Positions 32-18,889 are shown, counted from the stretch's first letter. The stretch is DNA of 26,974 nt from Macrostomum lignano (GCA_002269645.1 NIVC01000960.1:1-26974); one strand, 5' to 3'. The notes: generated from the letters alone by a model not told the origin. Made by a program: numbers and translations.

Positions 32-283
32 GCACGCGAAGGTGTATTCAGCACGCCAGTGAAGTATGAGACAGACCAGGCCTAAGGGCTACGGTCTGCG
101 ATGCTTCACGCCTGCCCCTATATTCAGCAGGTCAAGGCTGGAGAGGGAGGTCTGCACCCGCTATTTGCCACTGGCAGCCGCAGACCCCCCCCCCTCACGC
201 TGTTTCACAAGTCGACCCAGGGTACTCGTCCCCGCGTGTGTTCAAGGCAGACCCTAGGGCTGCTGGACAGACTGGGCTCCGAC
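32..283 (+). ncRNA. HDV-like self-cleaving ribozyme at the LINE 5' end (predicted cleavage between T31 and G32)
   Basis: P1 GCACGCG(32-38)/CGCGTGT(233-239) with G32.U239 wobble; P2 CCCA(216-219)/TGGG(273-276), extended by GTCG(211-214)/CGAC(280-283); P3 GGG(220-222)/CCC(230-232); L3 TACTCGT(223-229); P1.1 AC(224-225)/GT(240-241); P4 GGCAG(246-250)/CTGCT(260-264) capped by CC-CTAG-GG; J4/2 CAGAC with putative catalytic C268; long hairpin-rich J1/2 (39-210). Confidence 0.85.
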
Positions 284-504
284 GCTGGCGACCCATCCAG
301 TGGCTTCGGCCGAATTTGGGTATGCGGGTCTGGCTTGCCAGCCTGCAGGCCGTGGTACTGCTTAACGTACCCCCTAATGCCTAAGGTGTTTGACCGTGCC
401 GATGGGCTGGAAGGCCGGGGGGTTGTCCGGTCGCTAGCGGTCCTTTTCTTTTTCTTCTTTCCTCTTTCTTTTGTGACTCAGCTCACTCCTTCCCGCTTTC
501 AGCT

Positions 505-1969
505 ATGGCGTCATCCGCCTCTTTAACCCCCGCTGAAGCCGGGCCCCGGCAACTCCGGCCGGTGACTCTGGCACCAGCGCCGCCCCACCGGGGGCAGATG
601 GGCTTGCCGCCGGCTCGGCTGGTGACATGCCCGCACGCGCAACCGGGCCCTCCGCTGAAGCCCGACGCACCCGCAACCAACGCCGCAACGAGCGGCGACG
701 GCGACTACGGGGTACTGCGGGCCGGCCACCGGCGGAAGGGGAACCTAGGGAGGGCGAGGCTGCTGTTGGGCCGAAAGGAACCACAGCAACCCCTGCCCCC
801 AGGATACAACCCCCGCTGGTGAGCCACCCAGTATACCTGCTACAAGCGCGGCCGGGCCTTCGGGAACCGCCGCCACCAACTACGCCTCAAAGGTCAAGCT
901 CCAACCGGCGGTCATCGTCTTCGGGGAAGAGCAGGACCTCACGGCCGACGAGCTCGACAGTGCCTGGCGCACCATCGATGCTGCGCTCATCGACCAGCTC
1001 CTGGCGGGCCGCCCTGTGAGCGTGGTCAAGTCTGCCAAGACCGACGGCTGCATCTTCATCTGGTGCAGCTCGGAGGAGAGCAGCCGCAATCTACGCGAGC
1101 TTCTGCCAAAGCTGAACTGGCCCAAGAAGCTCGGCAAGCTCGTCTTCGCCAGCGAGGGCGAACGACAGAAGACCCAGCGCTTTCGCGTCTGGATCCCGGC
1201 CGGCAGTGCCATTAAGTCCGGAGATCAGCTTAGGCAAATATTGCTAAAGCTGCACCCCGACCTTAAGGTCAACGGGCTCCTACACCACGCCACTTCCCGC
1301 AAGGAGAAGGGGGCTACGGTGATCCTAGGGCTCTCTGATGACTGGGCTAAGCGCTTGCCGCCTAAGTCCACAATTCATATTGGTCTGACTCAGCTGACCA
1401 TCCTCCGTTGCGAGGAGCGGAAAGCTGATGAAGCCAAGAATGCCAAAGCTTCCGAAACCGGAACTGGGGCCCAGGCTCCTCCGGCAAAGAAGCCGAGGCA
1501 AACGGCCGATCCTATGCCCGGTAAGGCAGTTCGCGCTGCTGAAACCGGAAATCGCAATCGCAGACCCGCCAGGAGCACCCGGAGGTCCGGCCTGATCCAG
1601 CGCGCGCTGGACCAGGCCAAGAACCTTCGTGCGCATCGTGAGCGGGCCCGCGCTTCTCGCGCTCCACCCCAACAGCCAGAAGGCCAGACTCTAAGCGGGG
1701 AGGCTCCGACCGACTGGTTCGAGTCTGTGACTCACCAGGAGGCTGGCGCCACCCGCATCGACCTGACCGACGAGGCAGAGGGGACGGGCAGTGACAGCAC
1801 CGAAGCACGCAGGAGAGGCGACGGTAACGTCCACGCTGGGCTCACGTCCGCGGAGGACTCCACAGCCACCCTAACTGCTGAGGACGCTGAAACTCCCATG
1901 GAGGTCTGCGGGTCACCCACCACTGAAAAGGAGGAGGATGACCTGCTCAACGATTCCCCAACTGCGTGA
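505..1969 (+). pseudogene. LINE ORF1 (LOA-type, DUF4780-like core), apparently split by two -1 frameshifts near 544-547 and 796-800
   Basis: The frame of the 1016..1969 ORF is open from 749: ...TNYASKVKLQPAVIVFGEEQDLTADELDSAWRTIDAALIDQLLAGRPVSVVKS...FRVWIP. The basic segment ARRTRNQRRNERRRRLRG is in the -1 frame (open 537-1019). The ATG at 505 has good Kozak context in a third frame. One extra C in each of two C-runs gives a ~488-aa ORF. The DUF4780 resemblance is recalled, not searched. Confidence 0.7.
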
Positions 1970-1971
1970 TA

Positions 1972-4900
1972 ATGATCAGCAACCAGGGAATCCATTGCCT
2001 GCAGATTAATCTGCAGCACTGCGTCGCAGCCTCGGTCAACCTTATGCGTTACGCCGAGCTCGACAAGCCGGGGCTCATCCTCGTCCAGGAACCCTGGACT
2101 CTCAGAGGTAAGCCTCAAAACGCCCCTGCTGGCTACAATTGTTTTTATACTTACCCTCGCGAGGCCAACCAGCCTCCCAGAGCTTGCATCTTTGCGAGCA
2201 AAACGCTCAGTGCGTGGCTCAGATCGGACCTGTCCAACAGGGACATCTGCGTCATCCAATCCGAGGACCTTCTTCCTGGGAAGACCACCCTCATTGCCTC
2301 GGTTTACCTACCAGGCGATGCTGCGGTCGTCCCCAGAGCCCTCGCTACGCTGGTAGAGCTCTGCTCTGCCAAAAACTACGAGCTCATGGTTGCCGGCGAC
2401 ATCAACGCCCACCACACTCACTGGGGCAGCACTGGCATTAATCAGAGAGGCGAAGACCTCCTAGCCTACGTTGCCTCTACGACCCTCGAGTTCTGCAACT
2501 CTGGGTCCACCCCTACCTTTGACAACGGACGGTGGTCGGAGGTGATCGACGCTACGCTCGCAACGCCCAGACTCTACCAGAGTATTGGGGCGTGGCGGGT
2601 GCTTCCAGTGTCCTCACTATCGGATCACAAGTTCATCTCCTTCAACCTAATGGCCGCGCGTAGCGCAACTCGTGTTATGTGGAGACGGAACGCCAGAAAT
2701 ACGGATTGGGAAACCTTCGGGCTCGCCCTGAAGGAATTCCATCGGTCTCCTGGCCAACCATCCACGATCACGTCGTGCCGAGAGGCGGATGAGTGCGCGA
2801 CTGTTTTGACAGAGACGCTAACCGCCGCCTTTGAGGCGTCCTGCCCTTTAAAAGCCTATAAAGGGAAAAAATCGGCGCCGTGGTGGAATCCCGAGCTCGG
2901 CAACCTCCGTCGCAGGGCTAAGAGACTCCACCGCAGAGCAACTAAAACTAAGAGCCCTGCAGACCAAACCGCCTATCATGAAGCAATTCATGAGTTTAAA
3001 AGGCAGGTTAGGAATGCAAAGGCTCAAAAATGGCGACAATACTGTGAGGAGCTAGAGGGCTCACGCCCCACCTCCAGAGTTGTGAAAGCGCTCACGCTGG
3101 ACAAAATGTCTAAGCTCTCCTCGGTCAAACGCACCGACGGTACGTCCACGGACAACCCAGGGGAAACGCTTGATGTAATGCTCACTGCGTTTTTCCCTAA
3201 CGAGCCAGCTAACCAGACCACTCCGGATCACTCGGAGGGAGGTCACGCGCTGGCTGCATCTATCATCACGGAGGACCGCATTGTGAGAGCGGCAAATTCC
3301 TTCAAGCCTTTCAAAGCCCCAGGACCCGACGGCATTGTACCGGCCCTTCTAAGAGAGGCGGTTAAATGCCCAGGCTTCCTGCGCAAACTTTGCAGCCTTC
3401 TTCGGGCATGCATCACGCTTGGTTATGTCCCGCAGGCATGGACCGAGGCAAAGGTGATCTTTATCCCTAAGCCAGGCCGCCCGGACTACCATTCTATCAA
3501 ATCCTTCAGACCGATCAGCTTGACCTCCTCCCTGGTCAAGCTGATGGAGAGACTGGTGCTTTGGCGCCTTCTCTCTGTTGAGCTGAAGAACAAACCTCTC
3601 AGCGAGAACCAGCACGCTTTTCGGGCGGGTCGCTCCACTGAAAGCGCGCTGCACGTCCTGGTCGATAAACTCGAGAAGGCCGTGCTTGGTAGTGGCTTTG
3701 CTCTGGGGATCTTCCTGGACATCATTGGCGCCTTCGATAACGTCCTCTTTGAGGCGTTCCGAAGAGCTCTTTGTGAGAGGCTAACGCACTCACATCTCAC
3801 CAGATGAATCATGTACATGATCAGCCATCGCACGGCCACCGCCAGTCTGCTGGGCTACCAGAGGACGGTCCCCGTCTGCAAAGGTAGCCCGCAAGGTGGG
3901 GTGCTGTCTCCAGTTCTCTGGAATATGGTCATCGATGAGCTCCTCCGGGATGTTCGGCCTGACCCCATTCTGAAAGTTGGATATGCGGACGATGTCACCG
4001 CGGTGGCATCTGGTCCGTCCCCTGATACCCTCAGGGACCTTCTTCAGAACTTCATCTACGCTGCTGAGCAATGGGCGGACCGCTGTGGTTTAAGGCTCTC
4101 TGAGACTAAGACCGCAGCGATCATGTTCACCAGCAGGACCAAGTGGCAGATTCGGCCGCTCACGCTTTACGGAAGGGAAATCCCCTTCTGCAAGCAGACT
4201 AAATGTCTGGGTATTACCCTGGACCACAGGCTGAACTGGTCTCCCCACGTTCAAACAAAAGCCAAAAAGGCCTTCGCAGTCCTCGCGCAATTGCGCAGGG
4301 CCGTCGGCACCACCTGGGGGCTCACCCCCAAGCGCCTCTGGTGGATCTACACTGCAATGGTTAGGCCCGCTATCTCGTATGGCGGCCTGATCTGGGCTAG
4401 CGCCCTGCAGATAAAGACCTGTCTAGAGGCTCTCAGGAGAGCGCAAGGGCGCGCTTGTCGCACGATCATGAGCGCCCCTCCGTCTGCTCCTTACGATGGC
4501 CTCAACGCCTTCCTCAACATTCCTCCGCTGGACATCTTTGTCCGCAGGGAAGCGGCTAAGACTGCCCGCCGTCTAGCTGACGCTGGCATTCGAATCCAGC
4601 CCCATAGGGCCATGGCTAAGCGCAAGCTTCTGCCCCACGCTGACCTCTGCCTCAAGGACTTGAGAGACAGCGGCGGGCTCCACGTCCTATCTGACGGCGA
4701 ACCCCGCACTCTCAACCTCTTTCAGCGCTACAAGGTCACCATCCCCTCTAGGGATGCTGCCAATGACCACTGGAATTTCCAGGAGGTCCATTGCTACACG
4801 GACGGATCCATCAAAGACGGTCGCGCCGGCTTTGGGGTCTGCATCATCATCAACGGCCGCGTAATTGCCACGCATGCCCAGCACACTGGTAGACTCTCCA

Positions 4901-5676
4901 CAGTCTTCCAGAACGAAGTCCTTGCCATCAGCTCTTGCGCTGCAGAGCTAAACGCCAAGGTTACGAGAGGAAAGACTATTGTCATCCACTCCGACAGCCA
5001 AGCGGCCTTACAGGCCCTTTGCCACACCACAACGAACTCCCGGACAGTCGCCGACTGCGCCCGGCAGCTCAACCTCCTGGCCAGAAGCAATACTGTCAGG
5101 CTGAAGTGGATCCCAGGGCACGCAGGGTTTCCGGGGAACGAGCTGGCAGACACCCTCGCCAAGAGGGGCGGCTCTGGCTCTTTTTTCGGCCCTGCCCCCC
5201 TGGTCCCTATGCCCTTGACAGTCATCAATCGTCAGATCGACGACTGGGCTGACTCCCTCCACAGGGACAGATGGGCGGGCACCCAAAACTGCCGGCAATC
5301 TCGTGCCGCGGTTCCTTGCCCGTCTCACAGGCTCAGAAACATCCTTCTGAACCAGAATCGGAAGGATATTCGAGCCCTTGTCATGACCCTTACCGGCCAT
5401 GGCTACCTCGCCAGGCACTGCTTCCTCCGAGGCGACCTCGAGAGCGAAATTTGCCCCTTTTGCGAGTGCGACAATGAAGATGCTCAGCACTTTGTCTGTC
5501 ACTGCCCTTTCTTTAATAGAGACCGGCTACGCTACCTCGGGCCGAACCCGTCCATTGACGAGGTTTGCCAGCCCGACAGCATCCCACGGCTCATCCAGTT
5601 CCTTCGGGCGACTAGACGAGCCAGTTTCTTCCCAACGGAAGATCACGCTGCAGGACGGACCGGCGGACCACCCTGA
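1972..5676 (+). pseudogene. LINE ORF2 (AP endonuclease - reverse transcriptase - RNase H - CCHC knuckle), interrupted by one in-frame TGA at 3805-3807
   Basis: APE: QINLQH, VQEPW, SVYLP, GDINAHH, IDAT, SDH. RT: KAPGPDG, FRPISL, QHAFR, FLDIIGAFD, PQGGVLSP, YADD, LGITLD. RNase H: YTDGS, QNEVLAI, HSDSQAAL, WIPGH, NELADTLAK. C-terminus CPFC..EDAQHFVCHC. The 1966..3807 and 3811..5676 ORFs are in the same frame. Confidence 0.95.
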
Positions 5677-5717
5677 CCGGCCCCACGCCTCTGCCTGTCT
5701 GCGGGCCTTCAGGGGCT

Positions 5718-5784
5718 AGCGGAATGGGCGACCCTCGCCTCCCCGCTGTGTCTACGGACCACCCTGCAGCTAAGTCAAGTCAAG
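5718..5784 (+). other. LINE 3' end: GC-rich stem-loop (5718-5747) and (AAGTC)n tail (5772-5784)
   Basis: AGCGG(5718-22)/CCGCT(5743-47) and GGGCGA(5726-31)/TCGCCT(5735-40) close a CCC loop; tail reads TAAGTCAAGTCAAG. Confidence 0.6.
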
Positions 5785-5794
5785 GTCTAATTAT
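5782..5794 (+). repeat. Target-site duplication, right copy (AAGGTCTAATTAT)
   Basis: Identical to 19-31; directly follows the AAGTCAAGTC tail. Confidence 0.93.
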
Positions 5795-5919
5795 AGCTGA
5801 CATTGCTTTGCTCTTTGAGCGAGCTTTGTTCAAGGCTATTCTATTGCTATTCTGAATTAGCAGTGGGGACTGGCATTATCTCCGCTCCTAGCTCTCTGTA
5901 TGCATTGTTCATGTACTGT

Positions 5920-6250
5920 CCTCTCCCCTCTCTTCTCTCAGCTCCCCCATCTTCTCCCTCCCCTCTCCTCTCTCCATCTCTTCTCTATTCTCTCCTCTCC
6001 CCTCTCCACTCTCCGCTCTCCACTCTCTCTTCTCCGCTCTCTCCTCTCCGCTCTCCCCTCTCCACTCTCCCCATCCTCTCTCTTCCTTCTCCTCTCTTCC
6101 ATCTTCTCTCCTCCATCTCCTCTCCCCATCTTATCTCTCCCCTTCTTCTTCCTCATGTCCTCTCTCCCCTCTCTTCTCCTCCCTATCTTCTTCACTCCCC
6201 CCTCCTCTCCCCCTTTCACCTTTTTAAAGTGCAACCTCCTTTTCTCCTTT
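5920..6250. repeat. CT-rich low-complexity polypyrimidine tract
   Basis: Almost exclusively C/T on the + strand; source of spurious S/L/P-rich ORFs. Confidence 0.9.
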
Positions 6251-6548
6251 CTGTATCTCTTGCTATATTAGTGTTTATATTCTTGTTGACATTCACTAAT
6301 CTGAAACACACCATACGCAACATGTCGTTAGGGAGCTACTCTTTGTCATCTTTTTACTAGTTCACTACTTGAAATTGGTTTACAATGCAATATTTGCGTA
6401 TTTCTTTCAAATTCAAATTTGCTTCGTTTATTACTTTCAAGTATCAAAACAAGAGAATCATTGTTAAAATGGCATTTTTAGAAAAATATGAGTCACTACA
6501 ACTCTCACACAAAATACTACAGAACACAGAAACTATGAGTCACTATTC

Positions 6549-7400
6549 TTAGAATCCCAATACCTATTCTTAGAATCTCGATATCTATTCTTATAATCCC
6601 AATACCTATTCTTAGAATCTCGATATCTATTCCTAGAATCCCAATACCTATTCTTAGATTACCGATACTTGTTAAAATCCTGATCCATATTCTTAGAATC
6701 CTGATCCTTATTCTTAGACCTGATCCTTATTCTTAGAATCTCTATACCATTCTATAGAATCCCGATCCTTATTCTTGGAATCCCGATACCTATTTTTAGA
6801 ATCCCAATCCTTATTCTTAGAATCCCGATCCTTATTCTTTGAATCCCGATCCTTATTCTTAGAATCCCGATACCTATTTTTAGAATCCCGATCCTTATTC
6901 TTAGAATCCCGATACCTATTCTTAGAATCCCGATTCTTATTTTTAGAATCCCGATACCTATTCTTAGAATCTCGATCCTTATTTTTAGAATCCCGATACC
7001 TATTCTTAGAATCCCGATCCTTATTCTTAGAATCCCGATACCTATTCTTAGAATCCCGATCCATATTCTCAGAATCCCGATCCATATTCTTAGAATCCCG
7101 ATCCATATTCTCAGAATCCCGATCCATATTCTCAGAATCCCGATCCATATTCTTAGAATCTCGATACCTATTCTTAGAATCCCGATCCTTATTCTTAGAA
7201 TCCCGATCCATATTCTTAGAATCTCTATACCATTCTTAGAAGCTGGATACCTATTCTTAGAATCCCGATCCTTATTCTTAGAATCCCGATTCTTATTCTT
7301 AGAATCCCAACCCTCAAAATCAAAAATCTATTTTTAGAATCCTGATCACTGTTAATCAATCCCAACTACCGATCCCAATTCTTAGAATCAATCAATCAAT
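6549..7400. repeat. 21-bp minisatellite (TAGAATCCCGAT[AC/CC]CT/TTATTCT-like), roughly 35-40 copies, degenerate at the edges
   Basis: 7-aa periodic ORFs (MDRDSKN / FLESRYL) reflect the 21-nt unit, e.g. TAGAATCCCGATACCTATTCT. Confidence 0.95.
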
Positions 7401-7418
7401 CATTCAATCACTTCTCAG

Positions 7419-7757
7419 GTAAGTGCGCTGTGATCAAGACCAGCACCAGACAGACCTACTTCTTGCCCGTCATCGGTTTGGTTCCGCCTGAGGAGCTGAA
7501 ACCAGCCGATCAGGTCGGCGTTAACAAAGACTCGTTTCTAATCTTGGAAAAGCTGCCAGCCGAATACGATTCCCGAGTCAAAGCTATGGAAGTTGACGAG
7601 AGACCAACGGAGCAATACAGCGATATTGGCGGTTTAGATAAACAAATCCAAGAACTAATTGAAGCCGTCGTGCTTCCAATGACTCATAAGGAGAGATTTA
7701 AGTCGATCGGGATTCAACCGCCAAAGGGCGTGCTGTTGTATGGCCCGCCGGGTACTG
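7419..7757 (+). CDS. PSMC3: 26S proteasome regulatory ATPase subunit 6A (Rpt5), internal exon (first exon in window; 5' exons absent)
   Basis: Acceptor TTCTCAG|GT AAG TGC; (G)[21 protein letters not shown]...[32 protein letters not shown]...[10 protein letters not shown](G); donor G|GTGAGT; length 339 = 2+336+1. Confidence 0.96.
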
Positions 7758-7844: not shown

Positions 7845-8680
7845 AAATAGCCCCTGAATCTCAAATGGAGAAAATCGCCTCTGAATCCCAGATGGAGAAA
7901 ATCCCTCTGAATCTCAGATGGAGAAAATCGCCTCTGAATCTCAGTTAAGGAAAATCCCCTCTGAATCTCAATTGAGGAAAATCGCCTCTGAATCTCAGAT
8001 GAGGAAAATCCCCTCTGAATCTCAGTTGAGGAAAATGGCCTCTGAATCTCAGTTGAGGAAAATCACCTCTGAATCTCAGTTGAGGAAAATCACCTCTGAA
8101 TCTCAGTTAGGGAAAATCCGTCTGAATCTCAGTTAGGGAAAATCCCTCTGAATCTCAGTTGAGGAAAATCACCTCTGAATCTCAGTTAGGGAAAATCCCT
8201 CTGAATCTCAGATGAGGAAAATCACCTCTGAATCTCAGTTAGGGAAAATCCCTCTGAATCTCAGATGAGGAAAATCACCTCTGAATCTCAGTTGAGGAAA
8301 ATCACCTCTGAATCTCAGATGAGGAAAATGGCCTCTGAATCTCAGTTGAGGAAAATCACCTCTGAATCTCAGTTAGGGAAAATCCCTCTGAATCTCAGAT
8401 GAGGAAAATCCCTCTGAATCTCAGTTAGGGAAAATCCCTCTGAATCTCAGATGAGGAAAATCCCTCTGAATCTCAGATGAGGAAAATCACCTCTGAATCT
8501 CAGTTGAGGAAAATCACCTCTGAATCTCAGTTGAGGAAAATCACCCTGAATCTCAGTTGAGGAAAATCACCTCTGAATCTCAGTTAGGGAAAATCCGTCT
8601 GAATCTCAGTTAGGGAAAATCCCTCTGAATCTCAGATGAGGAAAATGGCCTCTGAATCTCAGTTGGGCAAAATCACCTGA
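7845..8680. repeat. 26-27-bp intronic minisatellite (AAAATCACCTCTGAATCTCAGTTGAGG), ~31 copies
   Basis: 9-aa periodic ORF (KIASESQLR); fills PSMC3 intron 7758-8758. Confidence 0.95.
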
Positions 8681-8718: not shown

Positions 8719-9722
<1,004 letters not shown>

Positions 9723-9816: not shown

Positions 9817-10155
9817 GTGATCGCAGCCACCAATCGAGTTGACATCCTCGACCCCGCCCTGCTCCGTTCGAGCCGACTGGATCGAAAAATCGAATTCCCA
9901 GCCCCGAACGAAGAAGCCAGAGCCAGGATTATGCAAATCCATTCGCGCAAAATGAACGTCAGATCCGATGTCAATTTTGACGAGTTGGCCAGGTGCACAG
10001 ATGATTTCAATGGCGCTCAGTGCAAAGCGGTCTGCGTTGAGGCTGGCATGCTGGCGCTGAGGCGTGGCGCCACTAGCGTCTCGCACGAAGACTTTATGGA
10101 CGCCATACTTGAGGTTCAGGCTAAGAAAAAGAGCAGCCTGAACTATTATGCTTGA
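9817..10155 (+). CDS. PSMC3: PSMC3/Rpt5 terminal exon
   Basis: Acceptor TTTCAG|GTG; [28 protein letters not shown]...[12 protein letters not shown]...[15 protein letters not shown]; TGA stop. Confidence 0.96.
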
Positions 10156-11760: not shown

Positions 11761-12360
11761 TTAGGACTTGTGAGAGTTGCAACACCATTGAAATGAGTCA
11801 GCCTGGCTAAGCTTCTTCCTGTTGGAGACACTTGTCCAAGAGCATTGGCAGCAGTATGCTGTGTGCTGCGGCGAATTAGATAGCTTCTTACTCAAGTTTT
11901 GCCTGTCAGGCATGAAGTTCCGAAAGAACATATAGTTTACAGACGATACCCAATGTTGACCGCGGAAAATTAAAACTTGAAAGTCGCACTTCATGCAATG
12001 CATATTGTCACAGGCTTTCTCCTGCATTAGGCTACAATGCCCATACTCCATCTCCTTTGGACCAGCCAGAAAAATAGACCTACACTTCAAAGTAGGTGTT
12101 TCATTCGAGTAGTCTTTGGCGGTCAGCGGTGCTTCAGTCGAAGATTTCTGTGGATGTGACTTGCTTTTCTTGCTATCAGATTCGATTTCGTCAAGAGATT
12201 TGAGCAGGTCGCTAGCATCGCTAGTTTTTGTTGCAGTTGTAGAGTTCACCTTAGTTGAATTGTTGGTCTTCACAGAGTTCACAGGAGTCAAAGTGGACTT
12301 TTTTTGCAATGAGCCTTCAATTTGATCCAGCAGATCGTCAACGTCATCTATTCCAGCCAT
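11761..12360 (-). CDS. CFAP418: Cilia- and flagella-associated protein 418 (C8orf37; retinal-maintenance domain), single-exon CDS, 199 aa (alternative start at 12375)
   Basis: N-terminal DDVDDLLDQIE; C-terminal Cys-rich domain ACDNMHCMKCDFQV...W...NYMFFRNFMPD...AYCCQCSW...W.C..H, matching the C8orf37 pattern as recalled; AATAAA on the - strand at 11632-11637. Confidence 0.88.
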   Translation of the reverse strand: MAGIDDVDDLLDQIEGSLQKKSTLTPVNSVKTNNSTKVNSTTATKTSDASDLLKSLDEIESDSKKSKSHPQKSSTEAPLTAKDYSNETPTLKCRSIFLAGPKEMEYGHCSLMQEKACDNMHCMKCDFQVLIFRGQHWVSSVNYMFFRNFMPDRQNLSKKLSNSPQHTAYCCQCSWTSVSNRKKLSQADSFQWCCNSHKS

Positions 12361-13930: not shown

Positions 13931-14267
13931 CCTCTCAGGCATTCGATCAATAATCACAAAGCGAATAACGTATCCTCTGGTTGGTCGTCTCGGTGCTTAA
14001 GCGTACGCGAACGATCCGACGAAGAAGCAGCGGTGCCAGCGCTAGTATAGTTCTGTTGCTGTTGCTGTTGAAGAAACAAGTTGAAATCCGAGCTAGAAAC
14101 GCCTGACGTAGCTGTCTGGGATGCCGCTCCCCCCGCTGTTGCTATGCCGGTGCGCTGAGCCAGGCCGTTCTGCAGGCCGGTCGCCAGCTGCTGGCCACCG
14201 TCAGTGGCGCCTGCGTAGGCGGCAGCCCCGCTCATGCCAGCTCGGTTGCGATCGAATGCCTGAGAGG
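13931..14267. repeat. Perfect 18-bp inverted repeat (arms 13931-13948 and 14250-14267) bracketing the TOM1 terminal exon
   Basis: CCTCTCAGGCATTCGATC is the exact reverse complement of GATCGAATGCCTGAGAGG. Confidence 0.95.
13954..14259 (-). CDS. TOM1: TOM1-family terminal exon 5
   Basis: Acceptor CCTCTCAG|GCA TTC; ...GVSSSDFNLFLQ...EDTLFAL* matches the TOM1/TOM1L2 C-terminal (E/D)FDxFL and LFAL* signatures; AATAAA on the - strand at 13731-13736. Confidence 0.9.
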   Translation of the reverse strand, partial: AFDRNRAGMSGAAAYAGATDGGQQLATGLQNGLAQRTGIATAGGAASQTATSGVSSSDFNLFLQQQQQQNYTSAGTAASSSDRSRTLKHRDDQPEDTLFAL

Positions 14268-14499
14268 CAGGTAGATTCAAGTAAAAAGCATCAGATATGA
14301 GATTACTTGCTACTATTAAAGAGCTTGAAAATCCCCGGGTTATTCCAAAAAAATCACGACAGTTTCAGCTGAAGGATGTAGGGTGCTCATTGCTCATACT
14401 AAAGCCTTCAGGAAAATCTGGCACGGTGCCCCAACAACTGACTGAGGATCTGGAAGGCTCCGTGGAGCATTCCAGTCTCTAGGAGGATACTCACGAGTA

Positions 14500-15090
14500 A
14501 GGGCTGGCCCAGGAACTGAGAATCTGGGAGGCTGGCCCAGCAACTGACACTCTTGGAAGTGGCCCAGCAACTGACACTCTTGGAAGTGGCCCAGCAACTG
14601 ACACTCTGGGAGGCTGGCCCAGCAACTGACACTCTGGGAGGCTGGCCCAGCAACTGACACTCTGGGAGGCTGGCCTAGCAACTGACACTCTTGGAAGTGG
14701 CCCAGCAACTGACACTCTGGGAGGCTGGCCCAGCAACTGACACTCTGGGAGGCTGGCCCAGCAACTGACACTCTGGAGGCTGGCCCAGCAACTGACACTC
14801 TGGGAGGCTGGCCTAGCAACTGAGGATCTGGGAGGCTGGCCAAGCAACTGACACTCTTGGAGGCTGGCCAAGCAACTGATGAGATCTGAGAGGCTGGCCC
14901 AGCAACTGATGAGATGTGGGAGGCTGACCCAGCAACTGACACTCTTGGAGGCTGGCCCAGCAACTGACACTCTTGGAGGCTGGCCCAGCAACTGACACTC
15001 TGGGAGGCTGACCCAGCAAACTGACACTCTGGGAGGCTGGCCCAGCAACTGAGGATCTGGGAGGCTGGCCCAGCAACTGAGGATCTGGGA
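14500..15090. repeat. 28-bp intronic minisatellite (GGGAGGCTGGCCCAGCAACTGACACTCT), ~21 copies
   Basis: 28-nt spacing of CCAGCAACTG; in TOM1 intron 14260-15145. Confidence 0.95.
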
Positions 15091-15145
15091 GGGCTTACTA
15101 AAGAATAAAACAATGCATCTATGCTCAGCTAGCCGCTAACAGTAC

Positions 15146-15428
15146 CTGCCGACTGCTAGCAAACATGTCAAATTCATCAGACTGTTCCAATGGCTGCTGC
15201 TGTTGCACAGATTGCGAACCGGCTTGGGTAATCTGGAGGCCAGCCAACTGCTGCCCAATGGATGACGGCTTCGGCTCGTCTGGTGTAGAGAAATCAATCA
15301 GCGGTGCCGCCTGCGGCTCGGGAGGCTGCGATGAAGCTGGAACCGGAGGCGGCTGCTGCAGAGCATCAGGCCGATTGAACATGGGATTAAATGAAGGCTG
15401 CTGTTGTTGTTGTTGCACTTGTGGTTGC
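15146..15428 (-). CDS. TOM1: TOM1-family exon 4 (Q/P-rich; LIDF and DEFDMFA motifs)
   Basis: Acceptor TTCCGCAG|G; ...PLIDFS...QQLAGLQI...SDEFDMFASSRQ; donor CAG|GTACTG; phases consistent. Confidence 0.88.
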
Positions 15429-15584
15429 CTGCGGAATAAATAAAATGAACGAATATTAGCATCAAACAGTACCACGGGAGGTACCTTTTTAAGGTTCATA
15501 TGGATAATTCGAAAGTTACATTTGAATGTCAGTAGACTTTAAACTCAGTGATATTGAAAGTTTCTGTAACTAAAAGACATTTAC

Positions 15585-15935
15585 GGTTGGCCATACTTGA
15601 TGCTTAGTCAAAATTCAGAGTTGCTCATAAATTATGGGTTGGTCATGCGTAGTAGTAGGTCATACTTAGGAGCTGGTCATATTAAAGGGTTGATCATAAT
15701 GAGGAGTTGGTCATAAACTATGGTTTGCTCATGTTTTGGAGTTGGTCATACTCAAGAGTTGGTCATACTTAACAGTAAGTCATGCATAGGAGTAATTGGT
15801 CATACTTAGGAGTAATTGGTCATACTTAGGAGTAATTGGTCATGCATAGGAGTAATTGGTCATGCTTAGGAGTTGGTCATAAATTACGGGTTGCTCATAT
15901 TTTAGAGTCGGTCATAGTTAGGCGTTGGTCATAAC
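15585..15935. repeat. Degenerate ~17-22-bp intronic minisatellite (core TTGGTCATA; e.g. CATACTTAGGAGTAATTGGT)
   Basis: Recurrent TTGGTCAT/TTGCTCAT core; in TOM1 intron 15429-15967. Confidence 0.85.
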
Positions 15936-15967
15936 TTGATAAGCTATCAAACTTAAAGAAAACAAAC

Positions 15968-16197
15968 CTATTCGCCTCTCGATAACGTTCGAACCGATCG
16001 AATCGCAGAAATCCGTTGTTTAAATCGTCATTGATACGCAGCAGCTCTCCGACAACTTCGTCGTTGGCTATGACGTCCACTAGTTCAACAATTCTCTGCT
16101 GCATCTGCCGGTTAGTGCGATTTAACTCTTGCAGCAGTGACAGGTCCTCCGGTTGCACTGAGTCTGGTGACAGCTCGTTCAGCATCTCGTTGAATAC
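15968..16197 (-). CDS. TOM1: TOM1-family exon 3 (GAT domain)
   Basis: Acceptor ATCAG|GTA; VFNEML.EL.P.....EDLSLLQELNRTNRQMQQRIVEL...ELLRINDDLNNGFLRFDRFERYR; donor AG|GTTTGT. Confidence 0.93.
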
Positions 16198-16240
16198 CTG
16201 ATTGTGTGATGGGGCAAAATGCAATTGTATACAATCGTAA

Positions 16241-16483
16241 TCATGATGATGATGCTCATATAGTCAAAATAATAACAACCATGATGATCATATAGTCACA
16301 ATACTCATAACCATAATGATGATCATATAGTCACAATTCTCATAACCATGATGATGATCATATAGTCACAATACTCACAATCATGATGATGTTCATATAG
16401 TCACAATACTCATAACCATGATGATGATCATATAGTCACAGTACTCATAACCATGATGATGTTCATATAGTCACAATACTCAT
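16241..16483. repeat. 35-bp intronic minisatellite (CATGATGATGATCATATAGTCACAATACTCATAAC), ~7 copies
   Basis: CATATAGTCACA at 16289, 16324, 16359, 16394, 16429, 16464 (35-nt period); TOM1 intron 16198-16610. Confidence 0.95.
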
Positions 16484-16610
16484 TTTATTAAAATGCTCCA
16501 ATAAAAGTCACAAGACTTAAAAAAAAGTAATTCGTACTGTTAATACTCCTGCTCCTAAAGAAGATACTAATAGACTCACTATGCTCATAACAAAACTTTC
16601 GGTTAATCAC

Positions 16611-17103
16611 CTTAACATTTCCAAGCACAATGTCCAATTCTGAGCGCAGCTTAGCCAACTGTTCAGGACTAGGCGTTGCGATTGGTCTCGATCTTTGACC
16701 GGACACCTGTTGATGCTGCTGATGAGGCTGAGTAGAGTGATGCTGCTGCTGCTGTTTAGACTGCTGCTGCGGACGTCGATTTGGCGATACGGGGCCAGAA
16801 TCGGCGCCAAAGTCGTTGCTAGGGAGAACAGCTATCGAATCGTGATTAGTAGAAGCGGCAGCTGCAGAGGCTGCGGATCTGGCTGGGGTGTTGATCGGCG
16901 CCATGGAGTCCAGATCGGTCATAGGAAATTCGACGCCTTTGCTGCGCAATTCCTCAACCAGACGCTCGACTTCGCGCAGTTCTGGCCGACCGCGAAACGC
17001 ATCCGACCAGGCTTGGAGCAGGCCGAGCACTCGGTCCTGGATCTGCTGCGGCGGCTCGTTCTTGGGGCTGATGAGGCGGACCAGCTCGTCCAGGAAGTCG
17101 CGT
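16611..17103 (-). CDS. TOM1: TOM1-family exon 2 (VHS end, linker, GAT start)
   Basis: Acceptor TTCCCAG|A CGC GAC; RDFLDELVRLISPKNEPP..IQDRVLGLLQAWSDAF...GVEFPMTDLDSMAPINTP...EQLAKLRSELDIVLGNVK; donor AAG|GTGATT. Confidence 0.92.
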
Positions 17104-17174
17104 CTGGGAACGGAGATTTCAGAGGGGCGGCGAATGGGGTGATTTTAATCCTATCTGACGGCTAAGTAATGCAG

Positions 17175-17737
<563 letters not shown>

Positions 17738-17785
17738 TTATTTACCAAAAGATCAGCCAAATGGATCAACAAAAATAAAACTCAC

Positions 17786-18075
17786 TTAGCAACCAGCAGG
17801 TGAAATCTGAATCCGCAATTCTTGACGCAAGTCTCCAGCACACTCAGACTGTACTGGACAGCACTGTTGCTGCGCCCAGCCGATGTTGTTAATCGTCGAC
17901 GAAGCGCTCGAAGAGCATCGCGAGGCCCCTCTTCTAATTCGTTAACAGCATCGCATACGGCCATTAGCAGAGCCCAATCCTCTCCTGATTGGGCCCCATC
18001 GGTGGCCCGTTCAACCAACTGACCAACTGGTGTAGAAAATGGATTGCCTTGCAGAATGTTTGACACAGTCTGCAT
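17786..18075 (-). CDS. TOM1: TOM1/TOM1L2-family protein, coding exon 1 (VHS domain N-part)
   Basis: [27 protein letters not shown]...EDWAL...CD..NE.EEGPRDA..A...[15 protein letters not shown]; donor AA|GTGAG. The five exons total 1602 nt (533 aa + stop). TOM1 versus TOM1L2 orthology is not resolvable by eye. Confidence 0.93.
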
Positions 18076-18889
18076 GCTTGTTTGATTTTCCCAATTCTCG
18101 ATTGTAAACAATTTATATCGAATAGCTTAGCTAAAGAGGTCTGGCAGGAAAAATCAAAGGCATGAAGTGATAGCATTTTGAGTAAGATAGCTAGTTATTC
18201 ACCAGATAAGTTTGTCATATAGATTTCAGTAGTCTAGATTAGGCTCTACTTGGAGCATTATTATTATTGTTTGGCTTTCTTGCTTCTAAGGGCAGACATA
18301 AGTAGTTACATTTGGTGCAGTAGCTAAAGTTGAGGCAGCCTTATTTATTTTACAAGCGTATTTACCAGACAGGCCAAATCATTCACCCACTAATTGAGCA
18401 GTAGAGAATGCACAACAATTAGTTAATACAACAAGCTGTCTATGGCCAAAGCTCTATTAACTGCCTACAAATTATGGTAGGCAGTGAAGGCCATTAATTG
18501 CCTAAGCATTCTAAAGTTTATTATAAACAATACTAAAACAAAATATGGTATATTTTTGCAACCAACAAAACCATATGCATAATGACATTGTCTTATGAAT
18601 GTATTTTGATTGGCCTTTAACAATTATTTCAAAGCATTTTAATAATGACAAGCTGTTGAAACCCGCGGATTTTGAACCCGGGGAATTTCAATCCCTGAAC
18701 TATTTTTGCATGTATTCTAAAATCTGAGGTCTAACTCAAACAAAAACTTGTTAATAGTTACGAAAGAGTTAAACATAAAATAGAGTACACATTTGTGTAA
18801 AATTAGGATTTGAGGCAAACATTGATATTGTTGGCTAGGGTGCTGCGCAGAATGTCAGGCAAACTCTGGCAGTCTGGCTGGCCTCTGCC

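Follow-up and report, generated by a model that had tools for sequence, protein, structure and literature searches.

A very recent I/ingi-like LINE with a predicted HDV-like ribozyme at its 5′ end, upstream of co-oriented PSMC3 exons in Macrostomum lignano

The LINE and the PSMC3 exons downstream of it

We analyzed a stretch of 26,974 nucleotides from the flatworm Macrostomum lignano (GCA_002269645.1, NIVC01000960.1:1-26974), hereafter the window, whose left part holds a non-LTR retrotransposon of the long interspersed nuclear element (LINE) type and, co-oriented with it on the + strand, the last three coding exons of the proteasome gene PSMC3. We regard it as highly probable that positions 32-5781 constitute a very recent, full-length I/ingi-like LINE, that this element bears at its 5′ end a ribozyme resembling that of hepatitis delta virus (HDV), whose +1 is the element's first nucleotide, and that it sits 1.6 kb upstream of the PSMC3 exons. 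The features of this part of the window are as follows:

19-31: left target-site duplication (TSD) AAGGTCTAATTAT, an exact 13-nt direct repeat with 5782-5794
32-5781, + strand: full-length non-LTR retrotransposon, comprising a 5′ untranslated region (UTR), open reading frames (ORFs) 1 and 2 and a short 3′ UTR ending ...CTAAGTCAAGTC; identified by Pfam domains, homologs, GC content and TSD
from 32, + strand: 5′ UTR, 473 nt, upstream of ORF1
505-1969, + strand: ORF1, broken in the window copy where two homopolymer runs (~545 and ~805) have each lost 1 nt
1972-5676, + strand: ORF2, with apurinic/apyrimidinic endonuclease (APE), reverse transcriptase (RT), RNase H and C-terminal CCHC regions, and an in-frame TGA at 3805-3807
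5782-5794: right TSD AAGGTCTAATTAT, a 13/13 match to 19-31
5795-6542: interval between LINE and satellite, made of AT-rich unique sequence and, at 5919-6212, a low-complexity block rich in CT, with no PSMC3 exon
6543-7308: 21-bp minisatellite, ~37 copies, homologous to the array in intron 2 of the closest paralogous locus
7419-7757, + strand: PSMC3/Rpt5 coding exon, residues from ~110, starting in phase 1 after an AG acceptor
8759-9046, + strand: PSMC3 coding exon
9818-10155, + strand: final PSMC3 coding exon, including the stop codon

The perfect 13-bp TSD marks the insertion as very young, and the element stands apart from most of the surrounding sequence in its GC content (~60% vs 31-44%). 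Within ORF2, Pfam recognizes the Exo_endo_phos, RVT_1 and RNase_H domains, to which a CCHC motif is added at the C-terminus; the best homologs of ORF2 are 61% and 57% identical to it over 99% of its length. The I/ingi-like label is tentative and reflects a comparison of the domain order (APE-RT-RNase H-zinc knuckle). A preliminary description of this window had recognized a LINE on the + strand reaching to ~5795; strand and identity are borne out, and the element, as bracketed by the TSD, is slightly shorter, at 32-5781.

The window copy is full-length in structure but not in coding capacity. At 3805-3807, where the family has a conserved Trp codon, this copy has TGA and is hence unable to encode the ORF2 protein, while the reading frame of ORF1 shifts from 1 to 0 to 2 across its two deletions. 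Another M. lignano copy, found inside the gene model P0132, has a continuous ORF1 across both frameshift sites; the ORF1 indels could be assembly errors, which is less likely for the substitution that creates the TGA in ORF2. The earlier expectation of a full-length element RNA is weakened to this extent: its template is full-length, but carries one stop codon in ORF2 and two frameshifts in ORF1. The ORF1 product is 36% and 62% identical, respectively, to those of two related loci, L005 and L086, which are considered below. As neither AATAAA nor ATTAAA occurs on the sense strand of the LINE, transcriptional read-through would meet no canonical polyadenylation signal there. The ORF1 stop codons overlap the ORF2 start codon (1965-1975, TGATAATGA), an arrangement compatible with termination-reinitiation.

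The family also surfaces in public protein sets. The M. lignano UniProt models P0123-P0125, P0130-P0133, P0140 and P0168 contain its ORF1 or ORF2 fused to host domains (Peptidase_S8, LRR, protein kinase, ankyrin and lipoamide acyltransferase), with P0132 even including translated 5′ UTR; these are probably artefacts of gene prediction arising from sense copies in or beside genes. We rejected an argument from these models for a sense-orientation bias as circular, since fusion is possible for sense copies only. Two full-length ORF2 proteins of this LINE clade, P0138 and P0150, appear at NCBI as 'MAG: Gammaproteobacteria bacterium' and most likely represent eukaryotic contamination of metagenome bins.

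Downstream of the element, the three PSMC3 exons join into a 320-codon open frame that ends in a stop codon and covers the 3′ three-quarters of the gene. The joined protein is 100% identical to the M. lignano model P0002 (a 320-aa fragment). Its identity is 98-99% to further PSMC3 models of this species and 88-92% to animal sequences named 26S proteasome regulatory subunit 6A/T5 in their sources; it carries the Pfam domains AAA, AAA_lid_3 and Prot_ATP_ID_OB_C and is orthologous to PSMC3/Rpt5. All splice sites are canonical, and the exons contain neither frameshifts nor stop codons. The AG at 7417-7418 directly precedes the first of these exons, whose first two bases complete a split Gly codon (G|GT AAG...); an upstream exon is hence required, and the annotated model of the paralog uses the equivalent acceptor. 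That this exon starts mid-codon after an acceptor, and that the sequence from the LINE to 7418 is devoid of N-terminal PSMC3 exons, agrees with the preliminary description, as does the co-orientation of the LINE and the gene. The absence extends to the whole window on either strand, where tblastn searches, with the first ~110 residues of two paralogs from M. lignano as queries, returned only noise at E-values up to 100.

A predicted HDV-like fold at the first nucleotide of the LINE

The TSD ends at 31, and the first helix of a nested double pseudoknot starts at 32. All the structural parts of an HDV-like ribozyme, namely P1, P3 with its loop L3, P1.1, P2 and P4, are present in the window:

32-283, + strand: predicted HDV-like self-cleaving ribozyme (nested double pseudoknot), 252 nt, with the predicted cut 5′ of G32 (31/32)
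32-38, + strand: P1 5′ strand GCACGCG, forming 7 bp with 233-239, with a G32.U239 wobble at the cleavage site
39-210, + strand: J1/2 insert, 172 nt, a three-arm domain closed by a stem
211-219, + strand: P2 5′ strand (P2a 211-214, A215 loop, P2b 216-219), pairing with 273-283
220-232, + strand: P3, 3 bp between GGG 220-222 and CCC 230-232, around L3 UACUCGU (223-229, 7 nt)
233-241, + strand: P1 3′ strand CGCGUGU (233-239), then the P1.1 nucleotides G240 and U241
A224-U241 and C225-G240: P1.1, 2 bp, the L3 pairing that forms the second pseudoknot
246-264, + strand: P4 hairpin of 7 bp, with an A251 bulge and a CUAG loop
265-272, + strand: J4/2 GGACAGAC, with C268 as the candidate catalytic cytosine
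273-283, + strand: P2 3′ strand (UGGG, CUC loop, CGAC)

The fold was read by hand and its pairs were checked by script. P2, which crosses P1, amounts to 8 bp with a 1x3 loop (4 bp, loop, 4 bp), and the non-pseudoknotted parts of the ribozyme, P2 and P4 among them, are recovered by minimum free energy (MFE) folding. The assignment of C268 as the catalytic cytosine is putative and follows from its place in the sequence. The earlier proposal of a ribozyme at the very first nucleotide of the element holds up computationally, with the +1 of the fold falling on the TSD boundary at 32. A permissive descriptor of the fold finds ~8 distinct P1 starts in the 26,974 nt of the window, so that a chance match at the one nucleotide defined by the TSD has a probability of ~3e-4. 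The J1/2 insert (39-210) folds by itself with an MFE of -70.2 kcal/mol (z -3.2), and in the modeled structure its closing stem would place P1 beside P2.

Further evidence for the fold comes from two homologous 5′ UTRs: that of L005, a 6,492-nt Logan contig with an ORF2 61% identical to that of the window, and that of L086, a JGI contig with an ORF1 62% identical, which is cut off inside J1/2, before the 5′ strand of P1. L005 aligns with the window along the 5′ UTR. The helix pairs of the three sequences were tabulated by script, because MAFFT core alignments set the L005 helices out of register. Every helix position held by L005 and L086 is paired, except for one U-U in P1.1 of L086, and changes on both sides of a helix are seen among the three sequences in P1 (2 positions), P1.1 (both pairs), P2a, P2b and P4. 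The P1 of L005 reads GCCUGC/GCAGGC (1-6/189-194), with two positions altered on both sides, and both pairs of its P1.1 (C180-G196 and U181-A195) are likewise changed on both sides and yet paired. L086 retains P2, P3 and P4, together with one P1.1 pair and a P1 3′ strand unlike that of the window. The layout of P2 is shared by all three (4 bp, 1x3 loop, 4-6 bp), with pairs switched from U-A to C-G or the reverse and a P2b in L005 that is longer than, and different from, that of the window; P3 is the same in all three; and P4 is built from different sequence in each, with 9 bp in L005 and 8 bp in L086. A C lies 3-4 nt before the 3′ strand of P2 in 3/3 homologs (C268 in the window, C228 in L005 and C143 in L086).

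The J1/2 domain itself is conserved. That of L005 (7-164, 158 nt) folds alone into the same closed three-arm domain (z -2.8), and one of its hairpins (window ~60-108; L005 29-77) is the most conserved stretch of the 5′ UTR, with 41 nt at 88% identity, against 61% for the ORF2 proteins of the two elements, and the sequence GUAUGAGA..GACCAGGCC.AAGGGCUA.GGUCU.CGAUGC. Possible roles of this hairpin are protein binding, or a contribution to an internal promoter or to an element resembling an internal ribosome entry site (IRES). A stretch at 337-411 of L005 resembles the ribozyme core of the window (GGGACUCG...CCCC...CAAGGCUAGCCCUUGGG) and equals the true positional homolog in its score with a single-sequence model; it may represent a second copy of the core or a decayed one.

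More distant relatives were sampled as 80 metagenome loci of 30-39% identity, among which nhmmer and blastn detected no homolog of the 5′ UTR. A search for the P3/L3 core, on the other hand, yielded compact HDV-like candidates in four loci (L034 16-88, L013 81-180, L043 201-272 and L028 143-~260), and possibly a further one in L035 from 1220. These compact candidates are situated ~2-2.5 kb upstream of the ORF2 match, the zone in which a 5′ UTR is expected, and display a G at +1, a GC-rich P3, a 7-nt L3 of the pattern U.Y.CGU and a 2-bp P1.1. From these sequence comparisons we conclude that a 5′ HDV-like ribozyme is probably a feature of this LINE lineage, of which the window copy would retain all the parts intact.

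Several observations weigh against the ribozyme as drawn. The covariation comes from two homologs only, and for P1 from one only. A second GCACGC at 51-56, 19 nt inside the element, offers an alternative 6-bp P1 with 234-239; it is confined to the window and not kept in L005, and might allow a minor cut at 50/51 or interfere with the proper fold. The 172-nt J1/2 insert could itself slow or misdirect folding. Rfam returns no ribozyme family at the gathering score over the whole window, or at E<=10 over positions 1-700, the families HDV_ribozyme, CPEB3 and drz-Agam included. This negative is weak: Rfam also gives no match in the four related loci with compact candidates, its HDV-like models are unable to span a 172-nt J1/2 insert, and an Rfam match is no defining feature of the fold class. 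Twister, too, has no match in 1-700, the sole hit being a twister-sister on the other strand at noise level (E=8). With default filters, a covariance model made solely from the window core recovers nothing but that core; with filters off, it reaches the L005 core at E=0.08, with L005 337-411 as an equally weak second match. Generic HDV descriptors are not discriminating by themselves, as the compact version gives 58 vs 91 matches on the two strands of 534 kb; the long/short J1/2 descriptors give 68 vs 88 matches on the two strands of 530 kb. Nor do the contig starts of distant relatives fall at a P1 more often than the background (15/85 vs 0.16). As for L005, its contig (run ERR14788467) starts at the predicted +1 and extends 530 nt past the 3′ end of the element, which would give it the look of a ribozyme-processed transcript with 3′ read-through, provided that the reads stem from RNA rather than DNA.

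One might hence ask if the 5′ structure is instead a conserved, structured 5′ UTR, serving as a protein-binding site, IRES-like element or internal promoter, that merely lends itself to being drawn as an HDV-like fold. The missing Rfam match, the readiness with which permissive descriptors match by chance, and the circumstance that the most conserved piece is the J1/2 hairpin rather than the catalytic core would all suit this alternative, as would the precedent of R2, whose protein is bound by an extended region of the ribozyme and whose fold is taken to act like an IRES (PMC6765202). We nevertheless deem it distinctly unlikely: the +1 of the fold matches the first nucleotide of the element in the window and the first of the contig in L005; covariation is seen in P1 and P1.1, the two pseudoknot helices, and would not be expected of a simple hairpin-based UTR; the C before the 3′ strand of P2 is kept throughout; compact versions of the fold occur in relatives; and a ribozyme can in any case coexist with a protein-binding or IRES-like role.

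Position of the LINE relative to the 5′ part of PSMC3

To place the LINE with respect to the gene, the window was compared with four paralogous loci, namely the closest one, L001 (NIVC01000029.1), and three of the other paralog group. L001 is collinear with the window from 6544 rightwards across all exons, introns and neighboring genes, with exon identities of 97-99% and a noncoding substitution divergence of 4-10%; numerous indels separate the introns of the two copies. In exons 3-5 there are 17 synonymous and 4 non-synonymous differences, giving a ratio of non-synonymous to synonymous divergence (pN/pS) of 0.07, with the pS of 0.076 being about equal to the noncoding divergence. We considered and rejected the possibility that the window and L001 are one locus separated by assembly errors, given the extent of these noncoding and synonymous changes; the sequences identify them as true paralogs or homeologs, which fits the hidden polyploidy of M. 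lignano as outlined in PMC10468722.

At least five PSMC3 loci are assembled in M. lignano, whereby the cleavage of one pre-mRNA would be buffered and its cost to the host diluted. This tempers the initial portrayal of the host as an essential gene: the exons are indeed those of PSMC3, but of one copy among several. The window copy further shows two replacements of its own: L to Q in PADLVGV, giving PADQVGV (7511-7513, codon 31 of the partial coding sequence), and G to S in LLRSGRLD (9875-9877, codon 227). Both residues are otherwise invariant across the four M. lignano paralogous loci, and human PSMC3 presumably has the same residues at both positions. Judged from sequence, these replacements may be a sign of relaxed constraint on the window copy.

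In L001, exon 1 is found at 10001-10009 and exon 2 at 11868-12133, with ~40 nt between its end and the 21-bp satellite occupying intron 2. Exon 2 is absent from the place in the window that the paralog predicts, and the homology to L001 stops at the satellite. The flanks of the LINE, the interval 5795-6542 and the reconstructed empty site found no match in the four paralogous loci, nor elsewhere in the window.

The preliminary description had placed the LINE inside a PSMC3 intron, a claim on which the evidence is divided: the exon required upstream of 7419, the sense orientation and the selection on exons 3-5 argue for it, and the missing exon 2 and the end of collinearity at the satellite argue against it. 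As the purifying selection on exons 3-5 implies that this copy was a complete gene until recently, the balance tilts slightly toward an intron, and we give a somewhat better than even chance to the LINE lying in intron 2 of PSMC3, with the upstream transcription being that of PSMC3. The fuller form of this proposal is that exons 1-2 lie to the left of the window, that the copy is intact and expressed, and that the ribozyme frees the element RNA from an RNA polymerase II (Pol II) precursor in competition with splicing; this we consider quite possible, if somewhat short of even. It accommodates the shared strand, the intact exons 3-5 with their canonical splice sites and low pN/pS, the youth of the insertion and the lack of a polyadenylation signal on the sense strand of the LINE. 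The gene models that fuse LINE copies to host exons indicate that sense copies in or next to genes do exist, but are silent on any orientation bias; and cleavage by the intronic Cpeb3 ribozyme can lower the host mRNA (PMC10919898). Besides the displaced or missing exon 2 and the break at the satellite, this fuller form has to contend with the sole public gene model for the window copy (P0002) being a fragment from exon 3, with the two replacements at otherwise invariant residues, and with a possible internal promoter in the 5′ UTR, such as L1Tc combines with its ribozyme (PMC3383444).

Alternatively, this PSMC3 copy may have lost its 5′ exons, whether by a deletion or rearrangement that recently took place at the satellite or through a scaffold mis-join or end, in which case the LINE would be intergenic or in unrelated sequence and its co-orientation with PSMC3 accidental. 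We treat this as a serious possibility, though doubtful and clearly below even. The homology break exactly at a tandem array, a typical site of rearrangement or mis-assembly, speaks for it; the unmatched sequence on either side of the LINE and up to the satellite, the 320-aa fragment as public model, the start of the window only 31 nt before the LINE and the radical nature of the two window-specific substitutions are also in keeping with it. Yet, had the 5′ exons been missing since the divergence from L001 (pS 0.076), ~28 non-synonymous changes would be expected on the window lineage; 2 are seen, with no frameshifts or stops, and any loss of the 5′ exons must hence be very recent. Moreover, the introns of the two copies differ by so many indels anyway that an enlarged intron 2 is plausible.

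Proposed mechanism, known parallels and the downstream sequence

For the LINE with an HDV-like ribozyme at its first nucleotide, we advance the following mechanism, in which the catalytic activity and the dependence on upstream transcription are drawn by analogy. A transcript entering from upstream would be cut co-transcriptionally between 31 and 32, leaving an uncapped element RNA with an exact 5′-OH end, as in R2 and L1Tc (PMC6765202, PMC4035085). This uncapped RNA would then be the template for retrotransposition, and its structured UTR may aid translation or protein binding. The RNA of the window copy could be mobilized only with proteins from sister copies. As a broader speculation, which we hold to be unlikely, the family might be promoterless and live sense-oriented in the introns of strongly expressed genes, being launched by Pol II read-through and its ribozyme; the J1/2 hairpin would then recruit element proteins or ribosomes, and polyploidy, with the at least five PSMC3 loci as an instance, would buffer the loss of host mRNA and allow insertions to persist.

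The release of LINE RNAs from cellular co-transcripts by HDV-like ribozymes is known (PMC4035085), and promoter-less LINEs riding on host transcripts, including from within introns, are an already published idea (PMC8501958). The mechanism for which the preliminary description drew on R2 is not new, being established for R2 and L1Tc (PMC4035085, PMC6765202). In domain make-up and lifestyle, the closest known system is L1Tc, which, with the other L1Tc/ingi LINEs of trypanosomatids, shares with the window element the combination of APE, RT, RNase H and a C-terminal nucleic-acid-binding domain, as well as little site specificity and a TSD of ~12-13 bp. L1Tc also has a ribozyme (L1TcRz) at its extreme 5′ end, with the proposed function of releasing the element from longer Pol II co-transcripts (PMC6765202, PMC4035085). 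L1TcRz differs in being compact, formed by the first 77 nt, and in doubling as the internal promoter Pr77, as against the 252-nt ribozyme of the window with its 172-nt J1/2 insert; and, in contrast to the hosts of L1Tc, the host of the window element is a flatworm with monocistronic, intron-containing genes. In the possession of a long ribozyme with a protein-binding extension, the closest parallel is R2, whose 5′ ribozyme likewise processes a host co-transcript. The R2 ribozyme is ~184 nt long, its extended region binds the element's protein, and the fold of the resulting uncapped RNA is thought to be IRES-like (PMC6765202). R2 has a restriction-like endonuclease, a single ORF, a fixed target in 28S ribosomal DNA and transcription by Pol I, whereas the window LINE combines two ORFs with an APE endonuclease and an RNase H domain, is flanked by a TSD and lies in a Pol II gene region.

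Within flatworms, Perere-3 of Schistosoma mansoni is comparable as a LINE with an APE and non-specific insertion with a TSD; its 5′ ribozyme is active (PMC8501958), where that of the window is predicted, and is a twister variant as opposed to an HDV-like double pseudoknot. If the LINE is intronic, a further parallel is the mammalian CPEB3 ribozyme, a sense HDV-like ribozyme in the intron of a protein-coding gene, whose cleavage can compete with splicing (PMC10919898). CPEB3 differs as a single, conserved and compact ribozyme outside active retroelements; the window ribozyme belongs to a young, possibly intronic LINE copy.

The LINEs known to carry an HDV-like ribozyme at the 5′ end are R2, L1Tc and a small number of insect elements, and the flatworm precedent for a LINE ribozyme consists of twister variants only, in Perere-3 (PMC8501958); full-text literature searches turned up no publication that connects flatworms with HDV-like ribozymes. 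By itself, the window LINE is a well-documented but expected kind of feature. It would add an HDV-like example in M. lignano, a transgenic laboratory flatworm, and one with a J1/2 domain that is unusually large, independently folded and conserved. Were the LINE truly intronic, the locus would further offer a natural setting for gauging the cost of a sense intronic LINE ribozyme to the host transcript, with the insertion-free paralogs as internal controls.

Turning to the sequence downstream, the three PSMC3 introns in the window are each largely minisatellite: the 21-mer noted above (6543-7308), a 27-mer (7854-8674) and a G-rich 21-mer (9092-9716). Matching arrays occupy the matching introns of L001, and these minisatellites are hence older than the duplication. 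The next genes encode an RMP-domain protein of 199 aa (11761-12360, - strand) and then the counterpart of the VHS/GAT-domain gene of L001 (region ~14000-18600), in the same order as in L001. The latter region contains repeats of its own, namely a 28-bp (14502-15092), a 35-bp (16246-16483) and a (TCTA)n array (17178-17735).

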